A stretch of DNA of 63,973 bases, counting the filler, from Reticulomyxa filosa (Eukaryota; Protista; Foraminifera), in assembly GCA_000512085.1 (NCBI GenBank). It is 15 parts of 15 records of this genome, joined end to end, with 100 filler letters (N's around TTAATTAATTAA, not from the genome) between each part and the next. Parts side by side here need not be neighbours in the genome. Positions count along the whole stretch, not along the records: positions 40,235 to 54,405 come from ASPP01006876.1; 14 more parts are not named here. One strand, written 5' to 3'. Position numbers and translations under genes: made by a program. Below are positions 39,850 through 55,652 of this stretch, in pieces; the stretch's first letter is position 1, and every line of letters begins with the position of its first letter. Under the pieces are notes generated by a model. The model did no database searches, had not been told where the DNA came from, and worked only from the letters and a program-made list of their open reading frames with translations.

Positions 39850-40279
39850 GTGCATTTCTGTGTGTGTGTGTGTGAGCAGCTCTTTTGTTTTTTTTCCCCC
39901 AAGAATGGAGAGAAAGAGGGGGAAGGAAACAAAACAAAAAAAAAAAGATGGAGAGGAATAGAGACATTTTTTTAAAAAAAAAGTTTTTGTTTCCATCAGT
40001 TTCGTATTACATTTCAGAATTTTCGGACTTTGAAAAATTTTTATTTATTTTTTAAAAATGTTTGTTTGCATTTTGGACAAGGAGGAAGGCAAGGGGGGGG
40101 GGGGGGGGGGGAAAAAAAAAAAAAAAAAAAAAAANNNNNNNNNNNNNNNNNNNNNNNNNNNNNNNNNNNNNNNNNNNNTTAATTAATTAANNNNNNNNNN
40201 NNNNNNNNNNNNNNNNNNNNNNNNNNNNNNNNNNTATATATATATATTATATGTATATATTATTGTTTTTTCTCATTCT

Positions 40280-43215
40280 GTGAAAAAAAAGGCAACTCGA
40301 TTAAAAGCCTCAATGGAATGCGCGATTCACGTGAAAGAGAAAGAAAGCACGAATGGACAAGACGTGACGGATTTGATGACATGCAGTTTGGAAATGCCAC
40401 ACTACAAGAAGGACTGGTCGGGACAGTTTGAGATTCAATGGTATCGCAACTACTACAATTCGTCACAGCGAATAGCGATCGAGGATGCGTGTGATAGCAC
40501 GTATGTGTTGAGTGCGGACGACATTGGAGCAATGATCCAAGTGGGCGTGACCAGCGTGTTAAACAAAGACGTGAAGGAGTACTCATCGATGATCGGACCC
40601 GTTCATCTCAGTAAGACAATCAGTGACCTCGTGTGTCAACATTTGGAAAAGCTGTCCACGAATCACGATATTGAATTTCAATTGACGCCCAATCCCGTCG
40701 ACGCCACGACCATGGCCCTGTTGAGTGCTCACTTGCAAAAATCCAAGACTTTGGTCATCCATTTCAATCGTCAAAAGGTGAAACTTCGAAACAGCAAAAA
40801 CATTACCATTTTAAAGCAGTCGTACAACTCTGGTCTGCGCATCAAATTGCACGCCTATTCTCACTTCTCCACATCCGCGTCCGACGTCAAGGACACTTTA
40901 TCCGAGACCGGCGCTCCGATATCTATTCGCTTCAAACAGTCGGGAGAGACCTTTCAATTGTTGGCCAAAACCGACGTCGAAAGAGAGCTATTGGCCATTT
41001 TGTTACGAACGTGTTGTCAGCAAGCGCAAGTTTTACTTTTCTCTTTGTAATACAAATAATCATAATTGAATGTATATATGTATATATTTATATATTTAAT
41101 TGTGGTTATTTATGTTATTTTCCTTTTTCCCCCCCTTTTTTTTTTTTCAAAAAAAAAAAAAAAAAAAAAAAAATTGAAAAATCTATAGAATGACAGTCAT
41201 CCGAATATTCGTGTATATCAACACGTGAAAAACTCGAATGAAATGGAAAGTTTCGAACTCGGAGCACAGTCGACAGCAGCTGCGAATACGGAGCAAGCGT
41301 TTATTTCCAAAATGCTTGAGCCATACTACAAGAGCAAACGTCAGTCGGGAACGAACGGGTCAACGACGGTTTCGCGCAAAGCCACGCTCACCGCTGACAG
41401 CACCAGTCACTTGGACTTTTTTTCATTCTCTTCGGATATTCCCACGTCAGCCATGGCCTCTCCAACGACTGCGAGAGATAAAGGCAAAGACAAAGATGTT
41501 TCGACAACTTTGCGTGACGTGGATGATTTATTCCCGTTATTTGAGTCCAATGATCCCGCCACTCAACAAGCATCTTCTGTTTCTACGACCACGGCGACAA
41601 CAAAGCCGTCGCAGGCAATAGCGGGACCCAATTTCAGCGATTTGTTGGGCGCTGTGGGAACCACTTCTGCCATTACTGCGGCCATCACGGACAAACATAA
41701 TGATCTGCTCGACCTTGCTAATTCCAATGACACGGAGGTACAAGGGGGAAGGAGGAGGAGGAACAGAGGCCAATGAAAATGATAAGAGTGGAGCGTGGAA
41801 AAAATTGGAATTGATCGACGCGTCACAGGCCAAAGTGGCAACTGAAGAAGACCTGGCCAAAGTGTCGTTTGAAATGGCCCCTGGACCTGGGTCCAAAACT
41901 CGAAAAAAAACTGGAAAACAAGCTTTTGTTTCCAAAAAAAAAAATATGCTACTAAGGCTGCTAATTCCAATTCACAACTAAATACAAATACAAATGCAAA
42001 TATAAATGCAAATATAAATACAAATATAAATGCAAATGCAAATACGAATAATAGTACAACAGATACAAATGACCCCCACTGTCATCAGTGACCACACTCA
42101 ACGATATTTACTCGAATTTGGATGTCGGAGAGAAAGCTCAGACTCTATCGCGAATAAAAGACGAGGCCACGACAGATTTACTAAACGCGATGCCTGGATC
42201 GCCCGCCTTGTTCTCCTCCGACTCCACGGCGTTTGCATTGGATTGGAACAAAAACACCAAAGACAAAGATAAAGACAAGGATCAGGACAACAAAGACGAT
42301 AACTCGCCTTTTATGCTGTCAGAGAATACGACTGACAACAATGACAATGAATCCAAAATTGAGCCGGTGACGAACTTGCTTGTGAGTGCCAAAATTGCTG
42401 ACAAATTGGACTACACAATTGAAAATGGACAGGTGGCCAAGTTTAACATTACCAGTACTTTGGTCATTGCTGTGAAACCTGTGCCTACCAAAGACATTTG
42501 CTTCGATGTAAAAATTGCCAGTTTGCAAGAGTCGATCGCATTGTCTTTTTCGTCTTTTGCGCATTTGAAGACTCCCAATGTCGATGAAATTGTGCAAATC
42601 AATTACCCTGCCAACAAGGAAGAAGTGCCTGTGCTCACGTGTTCTTGGAAAGTTATTCCTCTGTCCATCTGTCCGGTCATGATTAGGATCCTCAAAGATA
42701 TCCAATCCTCTCGTGCTTTACTGCATTGCAAATTGAAATTAAATCCCAAATATGCTGCTTTCAATATTAGTACACTCACCGTTGAGGCAAAGTGCATCCC
42801 TGATGATGCCTCCCTTCAAACATGCATCGAACGTGTCCCATCCCAAAATGATGATCTATGTCAATTCTTTTGGCCCAACGATGATCAATCACATGCGTTT
42901 ATGTGGAAAATCTACAAATTTGTTGGCACAAGTATTTTCTTTTTTTTTTTTTACTGTGTATGCGTACACAAATGAATGATGCACATGGATGTATTAAACA
43001 TAGGGAAAGAAAACAAACTAGATCAACTTGATTTGAAAGCAAACTTTGAAACTACCAAACCTTTGACTGACTTTGATGTTAGATGTTCATTTGTCATTGA
43101 AGATTTTGCTGTCTCCAAAATGTATTTGACAGAACCGCAGTATAAACAATCTGTCACTTTTCAAGACTTTGTTCATGTTCGAACGGTCCGTTCTGGAGAT
43201 TTTGTTGTTCGATGA
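40280..43215 (+). CDS. Ig-like + PH module (SCAB/AIR9-like), disordered linker, C-terminal mu-homology-like domain
   Basis: IQWYR..TYVLSADDIG..GPV (AIR9/SCAB Ig). FQLLAKTDVERELLAILLR (SCAB-type PH helix). SAKIADKLDYTIENGQV..ITSTL and terminal VRSGDF (muniscin/mu-homology-like). Homopolymer frameshifts ~41745 and ~41940. Confidence 0.55.
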
Positions 43216-44466
43216 TTTATCCAATCAAGCGTTTTCATTCCTTGTGCTCTTTTTTTTTTTTTGCTTTCTCTCTTTTCAATGTTTGAATTTTTGCTTGTTG
43301 CTTTGAACATATTTAAATGCCAGCAACTACCTGCAAAATTCATTGAAAAACAATCCCCCAGGGAAAAACTGTTTGATGGGCAGTTTGTGAATGATATTGT
43401 TGTCCAACTTTAGGGGGGTTTATTTCGTAAATTGATGACCTTCATACACGTTTTGGTAATCTTACATTTAAATGTTCAATCTCAAAACTGTTCCAAAAAA
43501 ATTTGAATGCACAATACAACAACGCAGCAAATTTCAAAAGAATAAGAAACTGCAAAAATCTCATCATTGAAAGCATTTTTTTGCAAAATTAAAGATATTA
43601 TTTCATTCTAATGTAGAAAGGGAGCTCAGCTAACGAAAACGTAGAAGAAAATTGAGGATAAAAAAACAGGATGTTTTATTTTATGAGTTGAGTTATTACA
43701 ACTTTGGAGTCAGTTATGACTCATGTATCACTACACTAATATGATGAAACCGGAAAACTGTATTTTTTCGTATTACTATTCTATGATTTTGTTAATTCTC
43801 CATATGTAACACAATATATCTGATCAATTCAAATGCAAAATTTTGGAAAGACAGATAAAAGATTAATGTGTATTTGAAAACTTCAACACTTTAAATATTT
43901 TTAAAAATTTGATTATGTTGATTTTTCATATAGAAAATCGATTATTATTTTAGAGTGCTATCACAATTGGAAATGTTTCCACTTTACAAATAATAATCCA
44001 AATGTATAATTCAAACATAACACGACAATCGCTTTCACTTACATTCTTTTAATAAAGTGAACGCACAAACTGATTGTTGAGAAATAATCATTCTCAATTT
44101 TAAATAATGCCAAATTGTTTTTTTTTTGAAAAAAGGATTAAAAATTTATCAATGCAGCTTTATACTTTTTGATCACTGCATAAATGTACTGTTTAAATAT
44201 TCTATTGCTTGAACACATCCAAGTAAAACAACAAGAGTGTCCATTTAAACCTTATTGTTTTCATGGACATTAAGCACGAGTGAACAACAGCTTATTTTTA
44301 TCTGTATATTATGTGATTAGGAGTAAATTTCTTAGGATTTTTATAAACAAAATCGAAATTTGTAACTTTAAGGGATTGCATAGATGCAAAACAGGAGTAT
44401 TTAACTTTTGTGTCTTGGATTTGTATCCAAAAAAGAAGGAATTTGAAATCAAGTTGGGAGATTGGA

Positions 44467-46412
44467 TTACTTTTTCCTTTGGTTTAGAAAGGGGTTAGTC
44501 CATTGACGGTTTGCACAATGGTCATAGCCAAAATTAATTTTGATAGATTGAGAAGACGGATACAATGGTTTTTCGTCATCCCAATTTTGTGACCATGCAC
44601 TGCCTAAAGTTGTGGTCAATGAAGTAAAGTTTTTGTTATTGGTAATTTTTTTTGCAGGAAATTCTGGAACCACACATTTGTCCGTTGAGCGAGCGCAAAG
44701 AGTGCTCCTTTGTTTATTGTTGAGTTCAGAAGTAGTGACAATCCCATATGCTCTACATTTTGATGAAGCATTTTTATCATAATTAAGAGAGCAATCAGAT
44801 GTGACATTCATGGATTTCGTGAATGTGCAATGACAAGAGAGACTTTGTCTCAAAGAATACTGATCCGAGTAAGAAAATGCTGTTGCAAGGAACGATTTTT
44901 CCAAAGACTGTGAAGCAGTTGCAGACATGGCTATAAGTGAACCGAATTCACTTTGTGCAAAATATGCAATTTTGGTTCCTTTTCATCGTATTCAACAAAA
45001 TTATCCAATCCAGAAACTTCAATGATATTTTTATGATAATTGCGAAATGATGGCTGATGATGCTTGGCGTGATCCATTTTGGGCAAAGCCTCATACATTT
45101 TTCCAAAGGCGGACATATACTGCGTCAGATCAATGGCATCAGAAGATTGGTTTGTCTTGCGCGTGTCAAATGGATATAAGATCACATTGTGATGGCGTCC
45201 AGAGCACATAATATAATGAGCGTCACGACATTCAAAGATGTTGATTCTTGTGAACAGACCACTTTGAAACAAATCAAAGTCATATCTCCTCCATTTCTGC
45301 AAAGGACGAGACACGGCAAGCATTCGCTCATCATATAAAGAGATACCATGGACCCCTGCAGTGGCTATCCATTGTTTATATTGTCCAATTGCGCTACACG
45401 TGTCAAAGTGCAGTACTTTGTGTGCCAACTTGCCGCCGATTCGGAGATCCAAGCACAGCAATTCCACGTCTGTTCCGATCCTTATCACTTTTGGATGGCT
45501 ATTCCACAAAAGCGTGCCCCAAGGTAGTCTCACTTTATTGCCTGAGAATTTCAAATCGATCTTTTCTCCTCTTGTCTTTGCGTCCCACACGTTCTTCACA
45601 AACAATACCCCATCGTCCGTCAAGAAGGCGATATTCGGCAGAGATTTCGATTCCAGAGCAAATGGCAAGTCACAAAAGCTGCCATGTAATATACGGTGAC
45701 GTTGGAACGACCAATCCGCCAACGCCTTCACTTGCAGTTGTGTCGACGCCCTCAGAGAGGACAAGTGAACCGAGTGTTGCGAATAGCCGCATGCTATACC
45801 GCTTGGGTTATCCCTATTTGACCCTGCCATCAAACCAATCAACGGTTTCTGTTGTTCATTATTGCTTTCAAATACTAATTTATTGTCTGTTATTTTTTCG
45901 TTCTGTTTTTTCCAAACAAAACAAAACAAAAAAAAAGTTGAACTTTCTTTTTTCAATACATAATTGCCGTGTGAAACTTAACCCATGTACTAATGCGATA
46001 TTTATTCAACCTTTCCCCAGAGGAGTGCATAAACACTTTGTGTTTTCCTACTTGCAGGACTTTGACTGTTGATCCAGACATTGCATGGTAAAAATGTTCA
46101 TCCCATTGATAGGTAGGTTTTGGTGCGTTTTTGGGAGGTCTTCCTCTTTTCCCTTGTATTTGCCGGAATAAATAGTTTTTCTCTAAATATATCCGCGGGT
46201 TCAAGTTTTCATTTTTAAAGATGAGGTTGCATTGGATTTGTTGTTCTGATTGCAGCATGAGTGCCGGTTCAATTTTTAAATATGAAATAGGGGCAGACAA
46301 TTTTATCAACTTCGAATGCTCATTGTTACTCAATTTGGCTTTGATGCCGTCAGAATAAGGGATAGAATATAATTTTCGAGTATGTAAAACCTTATTATGC
46401 TTATTTTGACAT
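44467..46412 (-). CDS. Beta-propeller protein resembling TAF1C/Rrn6 (Pol I core factor subunit)
   Basis: LHGSF..NIAFLTDDGVLFV..PWGTLLWNSHPKVIRIG..LLCLDLR..LYDERM..PLQKW follows the TAF1C/Rrn6 motif order. Boundaries need 1-nt corrections. Confidence 0.5.
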
Positions 46413-46481
46413 TAGAAGCTCTTCCGTTTATTTAAAAAAAAACTTGTATACACCAAAAATGGACACCATCCTATTATTTTT

Positions 46482-48378
46482 TTAGTGAACATCGAGGAGT
46501 TGAAAAAACGCATTGATAATGACAACGCATAGTGCTAATACATACAAAACAATTGACCTCCACTCGGTAACAGCTCTTTTCTTTATTTTGTAGTGCCGTT
46601 GTTTGAAATCTTCATCGATGAGCCATGAAACCTGGATAATCTTTAACGTGAGGAATCGTCCAATGATAAACCCGACAAACTCCAAAACGGCCATAACGGC
46701 ATATTGGGCAATGATGGTGGACATTTCCTTACTGCTTGTCGATCCCAAAGTCGGATAAACAGTTCGCAGATAATAATGAATAAACACATAAAAATAACAA
46801 ATACAATAATGGAAAAGATGTCTGCAATATTCGATTGAGCGTAGTTTATGTAATTGTCAATGACCTCCCCCATTTCCTTCAACTTTGAATCGGAGACCTC
46901 AGTCATTCGTTTAGAGTCTGATGGCGACGCAGGCTTTGAGTTATTGTCATCACGCATGCTGTCATTATTGATGTCCCCATTGTCATCACCAACGCTGTTG
47001 TTGTAGCCAGGATTGTTGGACGCGGTGGCGGAGGTCAAGCGAGTCGCACTCAACAAATGCCAACAATTGTTCTTGAAACAGGCAATGATGGCCTTCTTTA
47101 GGGCAAAGTAATGGGGAGTGGATTGAAAGAGATTGCTCCCAATTTCAAAGATTATTTGTGATAGTGAAAATACAAACAACGTCGGCCAGCTTTGTTCTGA
47201 CAAAAATAAGCCACGGTAGAGAATGATATGAAACGTATAATTCCAATACCTTTTTCAAAAACAAATAAACAAACAAACAAATAAAAAGTCAGAACTTGAA
47301 TTACGTATACATTCTACAAGTTGCTTGTTTGTAAGAATGGGACTTTAACCAGTAATATCGTTTCCAGTCCAAATAATGGACGGGATACAATAGCGAGGAG
47401 ACGAATTTGAAAAAAAAGGACCAAAGTATTTTAGCAATACTGAAGAAGAAGGCTAGAAATGACTGCACAACCGGACGATTGGCACTCTGCTTGTACACTT
47501 GCGAGAATATCGACAAATACACGTACAGCACAATAAATGTCATATATCCTATCACGAGACGCGGCCAATATCGAAGCAGTCGTTTGAACGAATGGCCGGA
47601 ATCACTTGGTGTGTGATACATTATAAACACAAACCAAGGGAATAGTATGATATTGGACAATATCAACGTGAATGGATATATCAAATTCAATATTGCCAAT
47701 GGTAATGGCAACGACAACACCGCCAAGTAAATTATCAGATTGAACACCAACGAACCTATCATTACTTTTTTTGGGACTATTGTCCCCCCCCCGCATGTAC
47801 ACACGTGCATGCATGTACACTCGTCAACATGCAAGTGGCACAATCATCGATCAAATAAATAAATAATAAATATATATATATATAATATGTATATATAATA
47901 TGTATATATAATATGTATATATAATATGTAATATGTAAACTGAACTCGGCTGAAGATCTTTTGTGTTGGAAATCACACTGTCCAATTGATAATGGGTATA
48001 CAACACCGAAATAGAGCAGTTAAAGAAGGCATAGACTCCATTGATCACAAACTTGAGATAATAGTTCTGGAACGAGTTATTGGGCGAATTATTCAGAGGC
48101 AAACCAAGCAATAACCACAGGAACGATATCAATGGAGGAATCCCAAATCGTAAGTACATCACCATAAACATCGGCATATGTTGTCCTTTTTCATTGGTAT
48201 CGTCTTCATCAAGGATAGGATATAGTGCATTAGCCTGCTTTGCCAAACCTTCGTATATGCCTCCAATTGTTGCTCCACGACGGCGACGTACCTCACCGCC
48301 ACTTGGCGAGTCCATTGTCCATTCAGGTACCGGCTCTTCGCTGAGTTTGGCATTTTTCGCCATATCCAGGGAGGCCAT
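46482..48378 (-). CDS. Multi-pass membrane protein of unknown family, multi-exon
   Basis: About 9-10 hydrophobic segments over ORFs 47851-48378, 47301-47843, 46643-47203 and 46482-46787, with one apparent frameshift in a T-run ~46790. Confidence 0.65.
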
Positions 48379-48657
48379 TTTAGTTTTGTAGGAATGTCTT
48401 AATACTATGCACGATCCCGAGTCTACAACGTTTGCAATGTCGAATTTTGAATCCCACCAGCTCCCGAGGACAGGAAAAGTAAATTACGCAAATACACAAG
48501 GGATTGAAAAACAGCATATATAAAAGGCGAAAATTTTTTTCATTAACGATTTACGAAATAACGACTATATTTTTTCTCTTTTCGAAACGGAGTAAGGAAT
48601 TATAAGGTAACGAAAGGAAAAAAACCAAAGTGGTTGGACTTCTAACATCCTTTGAAA

Positions 48658-51600
48658 ATGTCGATATTTCCACCTCAACTATTAAAAGTGAAAAGTAATA
48701 ATTCAACAAGCCTTGGAGAACATAACGAGATAAGAAATGTAAGCGCCATAAATCAGCCACGTTTTCGGCCGGAGACGGCTGGTTGTTTGCTCCTATAATA
48801 ACCACAGAATTCGCAGCACCTCTTTCTCCATCGCCATTTCTGATTGCAGTAAATGCAGCCCCTGCACATTTTATGGTGGAAGCCCCGTTACAAAGCTGTT
48901 GGATTGAGCAGAATTCCATGAATACGCCTGATATAAGGGATAGCCGTGAGTATTTGACCAAATTTGTGGAGAAGCACAAGACCAAACGGTCGAAGAAATA
49001 TTCCAAGCAGAACATGTGACGTATACGTATTTGCAAAACAACACATAAAGACACATATATACGTCTTCTGATGGAAACTATAACATTATAATTTTTTTCT
49101 TCCATAGGAGCACTGAACCAGTGATTGACAAAACTGTCAATATCAACCCTCCAAATAAAAATAACTTTAACACGGACAAATTACAAGTGAATGATTTCAA
49201 GACAGATCGAGAACAGGAGAGCGTTGATTCTTTGTTTGACGTAACGGACAGTGACAGAGAAGAGCCGAAAATGGGCAAGCATATTCGAACAGAACATAGA
49301 AGTAACCGTCAGTATACACGTACGCTTACAAATGAGAGCAAAAGCAAAAGTAAAAGCAAAAGCAAAAGTAGAAACAATAACGCGGAAGAAGCAAATGAAC
49401 AATTGGAAAATGAACCTAATGTAATCCATGCAGCAAGCATCCGCTATCGATCTAGCACGTCTCTAAGAAGTCACTGTCTGTCCGTCGACAATGTTGTCAA
49501 CAACAGTCTTAAACCGGGAGAAAAGATTAATTTGGTTTTTGCACCTGTGACAAGTAAAAGTTTTTTATATATTTTTAAAAAGTCGCTTTTTTTTTTTTTG
49601 TGATTAAAAAAAAAAATATCCAAAAAATATTAGATGACATTGGAAGCGACGGAGAAGAGCAAGCAAAATTAAAAGGCAATTTGAAAAAAATGGACAACAA
49701 GACAGAACGTCAGACATTCGACGATGATGTGATGTCAAGCGTGATCAATTCAATCGATAGTGACGACTTAGAGAAGCTAAGATACTTCGGTTCCTCTCGA
49801 TCATTGAACCGTATATTAAGGGGTCATCGCAAAGTCGTCGAGACAACAAAGACAAAAGCGGGACCTAATGACGATATTGGAAGCATTGGCAGCAGATCCA
49901 GCAACAGCAGTGACAGAAAAAACAACGTAAAAATGAGATATCCCAACAAATGTTCGTCCATGAAGCATGATTTGGTATATCTGACGTCCTCCCCGTTGGT
50001 GATCCAGTCAATGGATAAGCTCGTTCCATTGATGCAATTGAACGTCAAAGAGGAACGAGATCGACTGTTCGAAACGCTACGTAGTTGCAGTGTACAATTG
50101 AGTGCGAAGCATGCGATTGCAACGTCTACATCCATGTTCAGTTCACTTACTAGTGGATGTCGTATTATGCACTACAGTGGACATGGATTGCCACAGGCTT
50201 TGATCTTCGAGGATTCCAAACACGTCGGAGTCGCTCATCCTTTCAGCTGCGACAACATTGCTCTTGCTTGTAGAGAGGCCAAGTGCGAGCCGGACCTCGT
50301 TTTTGCGAGTGCATGTCACAGCGAAGTTATAGGCATGTCTTTTTCACGACCAACAGCATATGTACACATAACATCAAATCAAAAAATGAAAATATGTACG
50401 CGTAAAAAAAAAAAAAAGGTAATGCATTTGTGGCGGCTGGTATCAAACACGTGATTGCAGTAAAAACCGAATTTGAGTTGAATGACGATGCCGCCAGTGA
50501 ATTTACAAACCATTTTTATCATAGCCTATTAAATTGCTACACAATCGCGGATGCATTTAAACATGCAAAAAACGCGGTGGTTGGCATGGCAGGCATCGGT
50601 AAGCAAGATGAAAAAAAGTTTGTGCTGTTGCCCGCGGACCCGACGGGACGTATCCACAACGTAAAGCTTTTCCACCCTGGCGAATTAATGAAAGGAGAGC
50701 TGCGAGATGATAGTGTGCCATTGCCTCCGACCAACTTACCCTCTCCGGTGCCTCATTTCATTGGTCGTAGTGCGGACATGGTCAAGGTGTTTCGATACTT
50801 GGTCGACAGCGGGACCAAAATGGTCGGATTGACGGGAATGGCTGGCATCGGCAAGTCTGCATTGGCGATTATGACTGCCACGTATTTATGCCATCGCTCA
50901 ATCTTTAAAGGGGGCGTGTTCTATATCGACGTCGCAAAGCTAATGTCCACTCATCCCACTTTGGAGTCAATGTTGGTCCATACCATGCAATCTCATGAAC
51001 GCTATCAGCATATCCCTCAGCACACTTTCTTGGGTGGTATGCACAAGTTCGATCGTTTGCTTTTGGTGTTTGACCATATCGACAAATTCGACTGCGAATT
51101 CATTATTGACGACTTCTCCAAAAGGAGCGAACGAGAAGAGACAACAGTATACAAAAGAAGGGAAGATGATAACGATGACGGCGATGACAACAATTGTAAT
51201 TATTATTGCGGTGACGAGGACAATGGTGATGAATATACCGATAATAATAACAGCAACGACATCAACGACAACAAGGACAAACAAAAATACACAAAAGATA
51301 ATAGGATTGAAGAAATCCGTAGTAAACTTTTAAAACGGAAACTTCAAAAAAACAAGGATGCGATAATCCGCTTTTTTAATACGCTATTCGATTCTGCGCG
51401 TAATGAAATCAAGGTGTTGGTTACATCAACGACCAAACGAGATGAATTGACTCAGATTCGTGGAGGAATGTTTCGTTACTATGATTGTCACGGACTGTCT
51501 TCCGAAGATTCTGCCAAATTGTTTCAAAAATTGGCCAATCAATTTCGATGGAAAGATGTCCACCAGCACCAAGAGTTTATGTCCCTGCTAGCAAATAATC

Positions 51601-52503
51601 CTGCTAAAATTCAACAAATTGCTCAATTGAAACATGTTCACGAGTGTGATGATTTGAACAAAATTATTCAACTGTACAAACAAAGAAAACACGACGAATA
51701 TGAATGCCTCCAAAAAAAACTTGGAGGCACTCCAAAGAATACTCCTCGGGCCGAGTCTGTTGCAATCAAAGTAGAGCCTCCGCCGCCATCATACTCAGAA
51801 CTTCCCTTGGATGATCTAATGCTCAGAGATAAAAGTGTTAAAAAGGTATCTTTCAAGGCTGTATATGATTATTTTCGAAACAAGTTTCAACGAGTATCGC
51901 TCGTCCGTCCATTGAAACAAGACGACATTCTCCAAATGTGTCAATCTATGATGGACCAAAATCAACACCTTGCAATAGATACCTTTGAATACTTGTATCA
52001 ATGGTTTACTGGAGTTTGCCAACTTGTCAGCGCATTGAAAGAACTCTGGACTGATGCCAACCCTTTCCGAATTTACGGATTTATCACTCGTGCCGATGCA
52101 GAAAAAAAACTACAAGTCTTTTTTTTTTTACACTGCATATTTAAAAGAAAAAAAAGAGCCATATCCCCCAATGCAATTAATATATAAGGTAACATATTTA
52201 CAATATTTTATGGAACAATAGTTTACAAAACCAGGCACGTTTTTGGTGCGATTTAGTACCACCAAAACTTCTTCGATTGCCATTTCGTACAGGGAATGGA
52301 ACCGTGAAGATACAACAGTTGCAACTGCGTCAGTGCAACACATCAGCGGATTGTTAGTTTTGGATGCAATGTTCTTGTTCAAAGGGTACCACTACCCCTT
52401 CACTTTGTCCCAGTTTATTACTCGGTATTCGAAACTTACTTATTTGTACTGTGACACACAAATCATTCCCAAAACACATGTGTTTTGGGAAAACGGAATG
52501 TAG
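48658..52503 (+). CDS. CHAT (caspase-like) protease + NB-ARC/STAND NTPase + STAT-type linker/SH2 fusion protein, multi-exon (start codon uncertain)
   Basis: HYSGHG (His 50182-84) and SACHS (Cys 50314-16). FIGR, Walker A GMAGIGKS (50835-58), Walker B LLLVFD, VLVTS, GLSSEDSAKLF. RPL..QWF..LW..IYGFITRADAEKKL..PGTFLVRFS..IAISY..LTYLY..IPK..F. Introns 50333-50418 and 52116-52221 join the ORFs in frame. Confidence 0.85.
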
Positions 52504-53039
52504 AAATATTCCATGGTATCATTATATACATAAATTATCTTTTTTTTCTTTCTTCAACTTTTTTGTTTTGTCCTGTTTTCTATTATTAGTTGTTATTGCC
52601 TTGCCTTTTTTGGATGTTTTGGGTGCATCGCAGAGGGAGAAGAAATACTAACAGAAAGTGTTATAGCAATAAAAAGAACAAATAGAAATCAAGAGACCAA
52701 ATTATACTCATTTGTAAAGTGTTTGTGTTTTGTGTTCTTTTGAATTATATGCGGTTTTCTGTGTCTTCTCCCTCTCTTTTGGTAGCTTTTTTTTTTTTCT
52801 TAAATTAGTATAGCAGCGAAACGCAGTTTATGGTGCATATGTTACAAGGGGGGAAGAATTTATTGTTTTGTAAATGAAATGTACGTTTTCCATCACATTA
52901 CAAATTTGATACTATTACTCTTTCATATCATTGCCCTTTCTCAAGAATGAATATTTTGTTTTTTAAACAAACATATACATATAACAACAAGAGAAAAATA
53001 TACTTCAAAATATCAAAAAAACAAATTAATAATAAATGT

Positions 53040-53420
53040 TATAAGTCGAGACAACCAACGATTGTAAAAATAATTTATGCTTTTCCATGTGAACAGTCAG
53101 AGGTGATTACAGTATAGATTATAAAACGAATAATACAAGCCATTGTTTTCGGAGTGTTGAAGCATAAGAATATTGAAATTCAATATACTTCTTTCTTACA
53201 TTATTATCATAATAATAGTCAAAATGCAATTTATTCTTCATCAAGTGACAATAACATTCGTTTTTAGGATTTCAAACATAATAAGAAATTACAAATATTT
53301 AATCAACATACTGAAGGTGTTTGTGGCATTGAATTTCATCATTTAATAGTGGTAGATATTTTTTGTTCTGGATTATATGATAAAATCATTATATATAGGA
53401 CATTGAATAATCAAGTAATT
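53040..53420 (+). pseudogene. Degraded WD40-repeat gene fragment
   Basis: Broken frames read SSSSDNNIRF*DFKHNKKLQIFNQHTEGVCGIEF..FNSGRY..CSGLYDKII, with an in-frame stop replacing the W of a WD. Confidence 0.8.
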
Positions 53421-54049
53421 GAATGTATTCAAAAATATTGGAAATGTGATCTTGGTCTACTTCGAAATTTATCAAAGTATTCACATTTAGCTACATTAAA
53501 TCCAATACAAATGTTTTTCTCTTGAATTGCTTGTTTGGCATTATTTGGTAATCTTTCCATTTCTCAAAATTAAACTCAATTTCTTCAAGAGTTTCTTTGA
53601 TTTATTGTTCTGATTCTCGAATAGATACATTCTTGAACAGAACAATTTTGTTGATATCTGGATTCGTTGTTGCTTCATTTCTTCTCTTTTTCTGATCTTC
53701 TACATATCCAAAATTGTAGATAGCGCATTTTGGAGTTCTTGTTTCTTTGATTCATCTACATTCTCTTTTAAAAAAAAAATTAATATTTACCACACATTCA
53801 TCATTAATATTAACTTTTCTTAAAAAGTTGTACTTTGAAAGAGATTGCAGTTGGAAGTGTCAAGATACTTCGACATATCTTAAGTTATGAAGAAAGGATT
53901 TCAAACGTCGTCTAGGCCAAGAAAATTTCGGGCCAAGAAAGAAAGAAAATTCTAACTAGAAAATTTTTAACTGATATAAAATTTTTTTTATAGTATGACT
54001 TTAAATATTTTTGTTACCCTTTGGCAACGTTTTTTGTTGCCGTTCATTT

Positions 54050-54374
54050 TTGGGGGCTTCGTCGTCGGTTCAGCATATAGTGTGACTGAGATGTGGAAGT
54101 GCTTTTAAACTTACCGCGTATCTTGTTCTCAGTTGCTTTAAGTGTACCGTGGTGCAAACTACTGTAACTGAGATAGTAACTCTTTTACTGGCAACGGGAG
54201 ATTTGTTTGAGAGGGTATCGATCCTTGTTTAGCATTATCGAGGCAAATATCTGTCTTTTGTGTTTGGCAGAACTCCGAGGATCAGGTAACTTCTACTGAA
54301 ACTCGAAACCCACTCGCTGATAACAAGGCTTGTGAAGGCGACCCGACGGCCGAGGCAAGGCGTTTTTACCCCAA
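54050..54374 (+). ncRNA. Candidate structured RNA or mobile-element terminus (eight hairpins closed by a long-range helix)
   Basis: GC-richer and ORF-free. Complementary stems with many G-U pairs on the + strand (listed in findings). No known family recognised. Confidence 0.4.
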
Positions 54375-55652
54375 TCGGCTATACTGCAAGCCATGCTGGG
54401 CAAAANNNNNNNNNNNNNNNNNNNNNNNNNNNNNNNNNNNNNNNNNNNNTTAATTAATTAANNNNNNNNNNNNNNNNNNNNNNNNNNNNNNNNNNNNNNN
54501 NNNNNCACGAATATTATTTTTTCTATTGGACAGAATTCTTCTTTTTGTCTTTGCAAAAAGTTAACAAATTTCTAAAACTCTACAAAGAGAATATGAGTAT
54601 AGTTAATGAAAGAAAATGAATTTTTTAGTATTTTTGCTTTTTTACTAGCAAACGAGGTTTTGTTTCTCCATAAAAAAAACTTTTTTGGGATCAACAAGAA
54701 TTTTTTGGTTTTAATTTCTAGTTTACTCAACATTATAGGAAATGTGCAGTAATCCACCAACTATGTTTTTTTTTGCACATTCTGCAAAAAGGATTTTTTT
54801 GTATATCTTATTTATTTATTTTTGATACGTATTTGAGTATTGAATTATTTGGAAAGTTAGTATTGTTCTGAATAAAACAATCAATAGATTATTACTTAAT
54901 ACATCAAGATGCCTTTTATTACATGTTGATCTGATTATTTTTTTTTTGGATTAAAAAATTACAAATCAGAAAATTCCATTTCTTTCTTCCAAGCTTTTTA
55001 GAAGGACGAATTAATGTTCAAATAAATTCCACTCCAATTTAAAAAATTGTTTGCAAGTGGATAGCTATTTTTTTACTCTAATTTTATCCTTTTCTAACAA
55101 AAGTCTACTCCAAAAAAAAAACTAGATAAAAGATTGGATTAAAATTGACTCTTCCGAGTTCAAATAATTTGTAGTTTCTATTTTAAAAATAATGAATAAC
55201 TTAATCTTAGTGTAATTTAAAAAAGCAGTATAAGTTTATTAAACTATTTCACATTAATTGATGAAAATACATTATTTATGCAGTTTTAATGTTTCAAAGT
55301 CGAATATTTAAATTTTTACTCTTCACGATTTAAAAACAGAAACAAACACACACAAAGTTTATAAAAGTTGTGTTAAATTACACTTTTCCTTTTTTATTTT
55401 CAAACTTCTCCAAAAACTACAAAACACTATTTTCAAAGTTTTTGTAAAATCTTTTTAAAAAGAAACGTGTGATACACTTGTATACTAAGTTTTGTACAAA
55501 TTTTTAAAAATTTCTTGTCTTTATAAAAAAAAAATTACGTGTATTATCAAAATCCTATTTCACGTTGCCAAAACATTTTTGAAAACTCCTTTCATCATCC
55601 TTGAGAAAAAAAAGTTCAATATCTCGTCAAAAACAATCTTAAGCAAAAACAA

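Follow-up and report, generated by a model that had tools for sequence, protein, structure and literature searches.

Does the plus strand of contig ASPP01006876.1, from the foraminifer Reticulomyxa filosa (GCA_000512085.1), encode three separate proteins, or a single protein that joins a caspase-like protease, an NTPase switch and a reader of phosphotyrosine? The question is raised by the RFI_09060 locus, where the open reading frame (ORF) track gives three plus-strand ORFs in two frames (49600-50454, 50430-52187 and 52243-52503). The contig fills positions 40,235-54,405 of the window, by which we mean the whole stretch of 63,973 nucleotides (nt) that was analysed, and all coordinates for this locus are window positions. 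We are very nearly certain that one polypeptide here carries a CHAT protease, an NB-ARC STAND module and a STAT-type linker followed by an SH2 domain (linker-SH2). The best explanation overall, which we consider moderately probable, is that this three-module product works as a phosphotyrosine-controlled, apoptosome-like protease switch.

Gene structure of RFI_09060

As far as sequence comparison can tell, 49600-52503 (+) is one three-exon gene, RFI_09060. The exons, which we call A, B and C (Table 1), meet at 50332/50419 and 52115/52222. These are exactly the junctions at which an earlier note, made from this DNA sequence alone, had joined the three ORFs into one frame, and they are supported by the introns of a paralogue, by substitution patterns and by a family profile. 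The introns have a GC content of 25-29% compared with about 44% in the exons, and both contain stop codons in the incoming frame. Across intron 1 the spliced sequence SACHSEVI-G-NAFVAAGIKHV agrees with the family consensus VFVSACHSExxGxAFVxAGVPHV, and no alternative in-frame splice of this intron keeps the colinearity.

The closest paralogue is RFI_03936 (P0001) on contig L001 (ASPP01003622.1), with an identity of 53% by BLASTP and 57% by phmmer; for exon A taken separately it is 53% over 151 amino acids (aa). Intron 1 of L001 is 119 nt long, has GT..AG ends with the donor GTAAGT, and interrupts the same Gly codon in phase 1. Its intron 2 is placed after the same ...AEKKLQ codon, and the last exon behind it, L001:3260-3520, is missing from the annotation; it shares 59% identity with exon C and has its stop codon at the same place. 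For intron 2 we also used a family profile built from 20 other members, with the window, L001 and P0001 left out. Exon B ends at profile position 143 (match 44-143, 62 bits) and exon C starts at 146 (59.3 bits). Since these two positions adjoin across the intron, the exons abut with no gap or overlap. All three exons show strong purifying selection: between the window and L001 the proportion of nonsynonymous differences (pN) is 0.22-0.29 and that of synonymous differences (pS) is 0.72-0.81, which is saturated, in each exon, exon C included.

The gene is already in the public databases in a faulty form. All 565 residues of exon B are 100% identical to residues 403-967 of ETO28075.1 in a full-library phmmer search; this is RFI_09060 (X6NP69, 990 aa), annotated as "hypothetical / CHAT domain-containing protein". 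From its start at 48918 onwards, the public model treats two conserved coding stretches as introns, 49975-50007 (VYLTSSPLVIQ) and 50272-50420, the latter including the catalytic-Cys stretch REAKCEPDLVFASACHSEVIG. It then runs 24 codons into intron 2 (52116-52187), stops at 52187 and has no last exon. As a result, the public protein is missing the catalytic Cys, together with two thirds of its SH2 domain, and the CHAT-STAND-SH2 architecture is invisible in databases. RFI_03936 is mis-modelled as well (L001 1294-1412 and 3146-3259), with residues derived from intron 1 in the protein and an end inside intron 2. With the catalytic Cys and the SH2 hidden in both models, domain-architecture surveys that use them would miss the family.

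At the 5' end, the earlier note had started the gene at 48658, with an alternative first exon at 48658-48738. We found no support for this start; the sequence is unconserved and low-complexity. The two possible 5' exons of the public model (Table 1) are no better supported, with no Pfam domain in 48918-49558 and no similarity to the N-terminus of the paralogue. Runs of T13 and A11 (49540-49615) lie where the frame changes from ORF 49121-49603 to ORF 49600-50454, and the public model spans this region with an intron of about 24 nt. The frame change could come from a miscounted homopolymer or from a genuine, very short intron. Under either explanation about 300 N-terminal residues are low-complexity.

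Modules of the product and their family

Searches and folds of the RFI_09060 product were made with single exons or with uninterrupted homologues. Every motif that the earlier note had listed is in the translation: HYSGHG and SACHS; FIGR, GMAGIGKS, LLLVFD, VLVTS, GLSSEDSAKLF and NNP; GTFLVRFS and LTYLY..IPK..F.

CHAT protease. The first module is predicted to be a caspase-like cysteine protease of the CHAT type, and both residues of its His/Cys dyad are intact. The domain (PF12770) is cut by intron 1, and its pieces, searched apart, score 11.7 bits in exon A and 19.9 bits in exon B, each below the cutoff of 24; exon A gives weak Peptidase_C14 and CHAT matches in Pfam, as a split domain. For comparison, CHAT reaches 29.0 bits in the paralogue P0001 and 33-53 bits in full-length members of the family. 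For the fold we used the homologue P0011, whose full-length AlphaFold2 model has a mean confidence (pLDDT) of 86 and a predicted TM-score (pTM) of 0.72. Its top Foldseek match is the SAVED-CHAT filament protease 8TL0 (E 4e-8, 199 columns, root-mean-square deviation (rmsd) 3.3).

NTPase. Next is what motifs and model together identify as an Apaf-1/CED-4-type NB-ARC STAND NTPase, with the P-loop and Walker B intact. NB-ARC (PF00931) is found in exon B at 28.4 bits (E 1.2e-6), above its cutoff of 23.5, and NACHT at 23.0 bits, below its cutoff of 26.7. The AlphaFold2 model of exon B has a pLDDT of 84, and its best fold matches are Apaf-1 (1Z6T, Z 14.9, rmsd 3.2, 225 aligned), CED-4 (Z 14.5) and plant resistosomes and NLRs (about Z 14). 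The GxP motif is NNP in the clade of RFI_09060, against LxGxP in the family consensus. The model continues past the helical domain with a single long helix, which is followed by a disordered spacer (exon B residues 440-460).

Linker and SH2. The C-terminal part is a STAT-type linker plus SH2, with a phosphotyrosine pocket that is predicted to be intact. Exon C alone, which holds about two thirds of the SH2 domain (PF00017), scores 24.1 bits (E 3.9e-5), above the cutoff of 21, and the SH2 in full-length homologues scores 21.6-40.6 bits in Pfam. The STAT homology emerged only with a family profile and not with single-exon queries. When a profile of the C-terminal module, which takes in pieces of the window, was run against PDB sequences, STATs came first: Dictyostelium STATa (1UUR) at 2e-28 over the linker/EF-hand and SH2, then STAT5B at 6e-25 and STAT6 at 8e-23 over the linker, the SH2 and the LxxLYPxxPK..F ending. 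Matches to SH2 proteins of the ordinary kind (RasGAP, SHP2) reached only 58-62 bits, over the SH2 part alone. Foldseek with P0011 also found 1UUR, STAT6 and STAT5a, over 225-243 columns, along with AAA+/CED-4 folds. The resemblance to Dictyostelium STATs that the earlier note had read from the sequence is borne out by the family profile and by the fold of P0011. Single pieces were less informative against solved structures, with a weak Fyn SH2 match (E about 0.5) for exon C and nothing meaningful for the linker piece, and when the linker/SH2-start region of P0001 was used for a word-based search, P0001 was the sole match.

The rest of a STAT was also looked for. STAT_alpha, STAT_bind and Dict-STAT-coil had no Pfam match in the window or in any homologue scanned, and the frame stops 8 codons past ...IPKTHVF, so there is no tail tyrosine after the SH2; the paralogue is alike. 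The earlier note was therefore right that the DNA-binding domain and the tail are missing.

Family and distribution. Exon B had 2082 library matches at E<=1e-3, mainly CHAT-STAND proteins. We retrieved 163 proteins from these, namely the best 150 representatives at 50%-identity clustering and a handful of further members of those clusters, and 45 of the 163 have linker-SH2 after CHAT-STAND, which gives a family of at least 45 proteins with all three parts. The R. filosa members are RFI_09060, RFI_03936 and the fragment RFI_01709 (P0040). Other named sources are the rotaliid foraminifera Nonionella stella and Bolivina argentea and the chlorarachniophyte Norrisiella sphaerica, and the remaining members come from metatranscriptomes and metagenomes of uncultured eukaryotes. 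The architecture search across Rhizaria and other protists that the earlier note had called for thus found CHAT-STAND-SH2 well beyond R. filosa. In single polypeptides of Nonionella stella, Norrisiella sphaerica and environmental sequences, CHAT, STAND NTPase and SH2 are all above their Pfam cutoffs. Uninterrupted homologues, transcriptome-derived proteins included, have identical parts in identical order; one of them, P0103, was called as a single unbroken gene of 944 aa on a contig of 145 kb, and it has precomputed matches to CHAT, ATPase and SH2. Two further searches added little: the ESM Atlas had no large CHAT + SH2 cluster (the nearest were bacterial CHAT-AAA clusters and an oomycete FHA cluster), and another profile search yielded few proteins and told little about their taxonomy.

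The residues that matter for function are conserved across the family. The catalytic His is present in 31 of 33 members and the catalytic Cys in 32 of 36; the Walker A Lys is invariant (37/37) and the Walker B Asp is found in 37/39. In the SH2, 37 of 38 members have the betaB5 Arg and 37/39 have the alphaA Arg/Lys. The catalytic Cys is lost in P0010, P0013, P0014 and P0073 (ALGPRYANH, AIGAHSE, ATPYAEL and SARHSE), two of which have lost the His too, and the P-loop is kept. P0010, P0014 and P0073 keep the SH2; P0013 (417 aa) ends upstream of the SH2 region. These members are probably pseudo-proteases, going by their sequences, and they might regulate the active paralogues.

On a quick tree of the CHAT-end and nucleotide-binding region, RFI_09060 falls in a clade of 17 rows (SH-aLRT 96), 14 of them with SH2 and the other three short fragments, and one 68-row clade is wholly without SH2. 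The SH2 label is strongly clustered on this tree (19 changes vs 35.6 in shuffles), and the SH2 fusion may have had one origin or a few. Close relatives without SH2 have TPR arrays (17/39) or LRR. The CHAT-STAND chassis is highly modular, and phospho-reader fusions recur on it. Among SH2-less eukaryotic relatives, P0058, P0157, P0087, P0084, P0126 and P0131 have N-terminal FHA, PAS, LRR plus protein kinase, LRR or UBA domains. FHA is a phosphothreonine reader; a regular-expression search for the FHA motif found none, and Pfam placed FHA at the N-terminus of two relatives. The ends of family members vary too. Residues 1-440 of P0014 (Bolivina argentea) form an N-terminal extension before CHAT with no Pfam match, and P0010, P0011, P0012 and P0107 have long low-complexity tails past the SH2, rich in Tyr, Asn, Gln and His, which RFI_09060 and RFI_03936 do not have. 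These Tyr-containing tails are possible phosphorylation or self-docking sites.

A proposed phosphotyrosine switch and its rivals

In RFI_09060 the linker-SH2 is C-terminal, in the sensor position that TPR repeats hold in its nearest relatives, as the earlier note had supposed. We propose that a tyrosine-phosphorylated ligand would dock on the SH2 and that the NTPase module would then be released or recruited. Nucleotide-dependent oligomerisation would bring CHAT domains together and turn proteolysis on, and the protein would in this way act as an apoptosome-like protease switch under phosphotyrosine control. Gating of a protease by phosphotyrosine is plausible here, and it would be consistent with the finding that the catalytic dyad, the Walker A Lys and the pocket Arg are kept across the family. 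For the specific mechanism, phosphotyrosine-driven oligomerisation and protease activation, we argue by analogy, and our confidence in it is a little short of even. We suggest more tentatively still that rhizarian protists, and probably other uncultured eukaryotes too, may run a phosphotyrosine-gated apoptosome-like protease with a phospho-reader sensor.

Several points weigh against the reading we prefer. A search for RNA sequencing runs over 48500-52800 listed none, so the support for the splice junctions is comparative. The donor of intron 1 is a non-canonical GC (AG|GCATGT at 50333-50334) where the paralogue has GTAAGT; the intron may truly be of the GC-AG class, or the base may reflect a polymorphism or an error in sequencing. 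Both candidate starts of the gene, 48658 and 48918, lie in unconserved sequence, and conservation begins only near 49966 (DLVYLTSSPL). The fold evidence for CHAT and for a complete SH2 belongs to the homologue P0011 and not to RFI_09060 itself. For the exon B model, ORC/Cdc6 matches at Z 13.9, within about 1 of Apaf-1 and CED-4 (Z 14-15). No winged-helix domain or MHD-type His was recognised in the STAND model, where no separate domain search was made, and together with NNP in place of GxP this means that nucleotide-state coupling may differ from that of Apaf-1. Some paralogues have no catalytic Cys or His, so not every member acts as a protease. Finally, the literature search was silent on tyrosine kinases in R. 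filosa.

The alternative that we take most seriously accepts the same protein but has the linker-SH2 serve for docking, localisation, dimerisation or binding of a non-phosphorylated ligand, with some other cue firing the NTPase. STAT SH2 domains do both receptor docking and reciprocal dimerisation, the Tyr-containing tails of P0010, P0011, P0012 and P0107 could allow SH2-tail pairing, and the other reader domains of relatives (FHA, PAS, UBA, LRR-kinase) are N-terminal and not in the sensor position. However, RFI_09060 and its closest paralogue end right behind the SH2, which excludes STAT-like reciprocal SH2-tail pairing for both of them, though not for the Tyr-tailed paralogues. The linker-SH2 also holds the C-terminal place of the TPR sensors, and the pocket Arg is nearly invariant. 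We consider this alternative fairly unlikely.

The other two rivals concern the gene and not the use of its SH2. RFI_09060 might be a decaying or silent paralogue, unexpressed or wrongly spliced, in a family where the architecture is real. It would fit with the GC donor, with the empty listing of RNA runs, with the long homopolymer runs and frame change at 49590-49615, and with a multi-copy family in which some copies have lost catalytic residues. Yet the three exons are open, all catalytic and binding motifs are kept, and pN is well below pS throughout; in addition, GC-AG introns are a known functional minority class. We regard decay or silence as improbable. That the fusion is an artefact, read across three separate genes or produced by mis-assembly, is far less probable again. 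It has in its favour only the ORF track, with three ORFs in two frames, while transcript-derived and uninterrupted homologues hold all the parts in the same order in one polypeptide and the intron positions are conserved in L001. Moreover, CHAT and SH2 are each split by an intron, so no ORF alone encodes either of them whole, and we consider separate genes or mis-assembly effectively refuted.

If the switch that we propose is real, a kinase-written mark can arm a caspase-like protease within one polypeptide, and phosphotyrosine signalling would be tied to caspase-fold proteolysis outside animals and amoebozoans. It could serve in immunity or cell death, as the earlier note had supposed, or in telling self from non-self in giant syncytial cells. 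This link between phosphotyrosine and proteolysis is compact and testable, and it would fall in a eukaryotic supergroup in which neither of the two is known to have been studied.

Neighbouring frames and comparison with known systems

Table 1. Features of the RFI_09060 locus, in window positions.
Feature	Position	Strand	Remarks
Possible 5' exons of public model	48918-49016 and 49109-49558	+	Low-complexity, unconserved; candidate only
Exon A	49600-50332	+	Open frame from 49600; first ~120 codons low-complexity
CHAT, N-terminal part	from ~49966	+	Predicted catalytic His 50182-50184 (HYSGHG) and Cys 50314-50316 (SACHS)
Intron 1	50333-50418	+	86 nt, GC..AG, phase 1 within Gly codon, 29% GC
Exon B	50419-52115	+	CHAT C-terminal end, NB-ARC/STAND, spacer, STAT-type linker, SH2 start
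CHAT, C-terminal end	exon B to ~50600	+	Pfam 19.9 bits
NB-ARC/STAND NTPase	~50748-51719	+	Walker A Lys 50853-50855 (GMAGIGKS), Walker B Asp 51072-51074 (LLLVFD)
Acidic low-complexity insert	~51153-51260	+	Within NB-ARC region, exon B
STAT-type linker	~51807-52055	+	Matches independent family profile; disordered spacer before
SH2, first part	~52041-52115	+	alphaA Arg 52089-52091 (GFITRAD); exon B
Intron 2	52116-52221	+	106 nt, GT..AG, phase 0, 25% GC; between SH2 helix alphaA and strand betaB
Exon C	52222-52503	+	Remainder of SH2 and STAT-like C-terminal stretch LTYLYCDTQIIPKTHVF; stop TAG 52501-52503
SH2, remainder	exon C	+	betaB5 Arg 52249-52251 (GTFLVRFS)

None of the ORFs in 40280-49105, on either strand, has a Pfam match above threshold. 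A minus-strand ORF run at 46643-48378 and 48551-49105 has hydrophobic segments and is probably multi-pass membrane, with no Pfam match, and a 184-aa minus-strand ORF overlaps the first exon that the earlier note had proposed at 48658. ORF 40280-41050 (+) has sub-threshold AIR9 A9 and SCAB Ig-like matches of 22-24 bits and probably belongs with ORFs 41225-41776 and 42088-42975 to another multi-exon gene.

The earlier note gave this architecture as not known to have been described. That stands to the extent that searchable full text held no CHAT-STAND-SH2 protein and no foraminiferal SH2 signalling (the genome paper and the SH2-evolution reviews are outside this scope, and a prior mention there is possible), but the architecture is not unique to this gene, given the size of the family. 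The nearest text is a survey from the Aravind group, where SH2 comes up solely as a domain attached C-terminally to TRADD-N proteins of metazoans.

The three-part layout is common to RFI_03936, RFI_01709 (a fragment) and the homologues from Nonionella stella and Bolivina argentea. Outside this family, the CHAT-STAND-TPR proteins of bacteria and eukaryotes (such as the TPR-bearing P0003, P0004 and P0170) share the HxxGHG/SACHS CHAT followed by an FxGR-P-loop STAND NTPase. The first four CHAT-STAND relatives are 33-37% identical over CHAT and the nucleotide-binding domain, and a further relative, P0002 from the brown alga Nemacystus decipiens, has no TPR match. In these proteins the sensor is a TPR array or LRR, whereas RFI_09060 has a STAT-type linker plus SH2 and no repeats. 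The prokaryotic defence proteases SAVED-CHAT and TPR-CHAT (Craspase) share the CHAT fold, as seen with P0011, and the ligand-driven assembly that we propose by analogy for RFI_09060. They have no STAND NTPase or SH2, and are triggered by cyclic oligonucleotides or by a CRISPR complex.

With the STATs (STATa 1UUR and human STAT5, STAT6, STAT1 and STAT3), RFI_09060 shares the EF-hand-like linker and the SH2 as one unit, with the core FxxW...W...GF(I/V)sR...GTFLxRFS and the ending LxxLYPxxxK..F. Unlike them it lacks the N-terminal, coiled-coil and DNA-binding domains as well as a phosphorylatable tail, and NB-ARC and CHAT precede the linker. Because the unit is fused to a protease and an NTPase and the STAT DNA-binding domain, coiled coil and tail are missing, RFI_09060 does not belong to the STAT family and is not a transcription factor. 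It would be a second, non-transcriptional home for the STAT linker-SH2 as a mobile module, which bears on the origin of STATs and of SH2 signalling.

STAND NTPases (Apaf-1, NLRs, bacterial Avs) are a common chassis of cell-death and immune switches, and to our knowledge nearly all of them sense a ligand by binding it directly with an array of repeats. The apoptosomes of Apaf-1 and CED-4, with caspase-9 and CED-3, share the NB-ARC fold with RFI_09060, and the proximity activation of a caspase-fold protease by an NTPase oligomer is what we propose, by analogy, for this protein. The differences are that in RFI_09060 the protease is fused in cis, with no CARD recruitment, that the sensor is SH2 and not WD40, and that NNP stands for GxP. 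Judged by its domains, this is a STAND switch with an unprecedented phospho-reader as its putative sensor, conserved in at least two rhizarian lineages.

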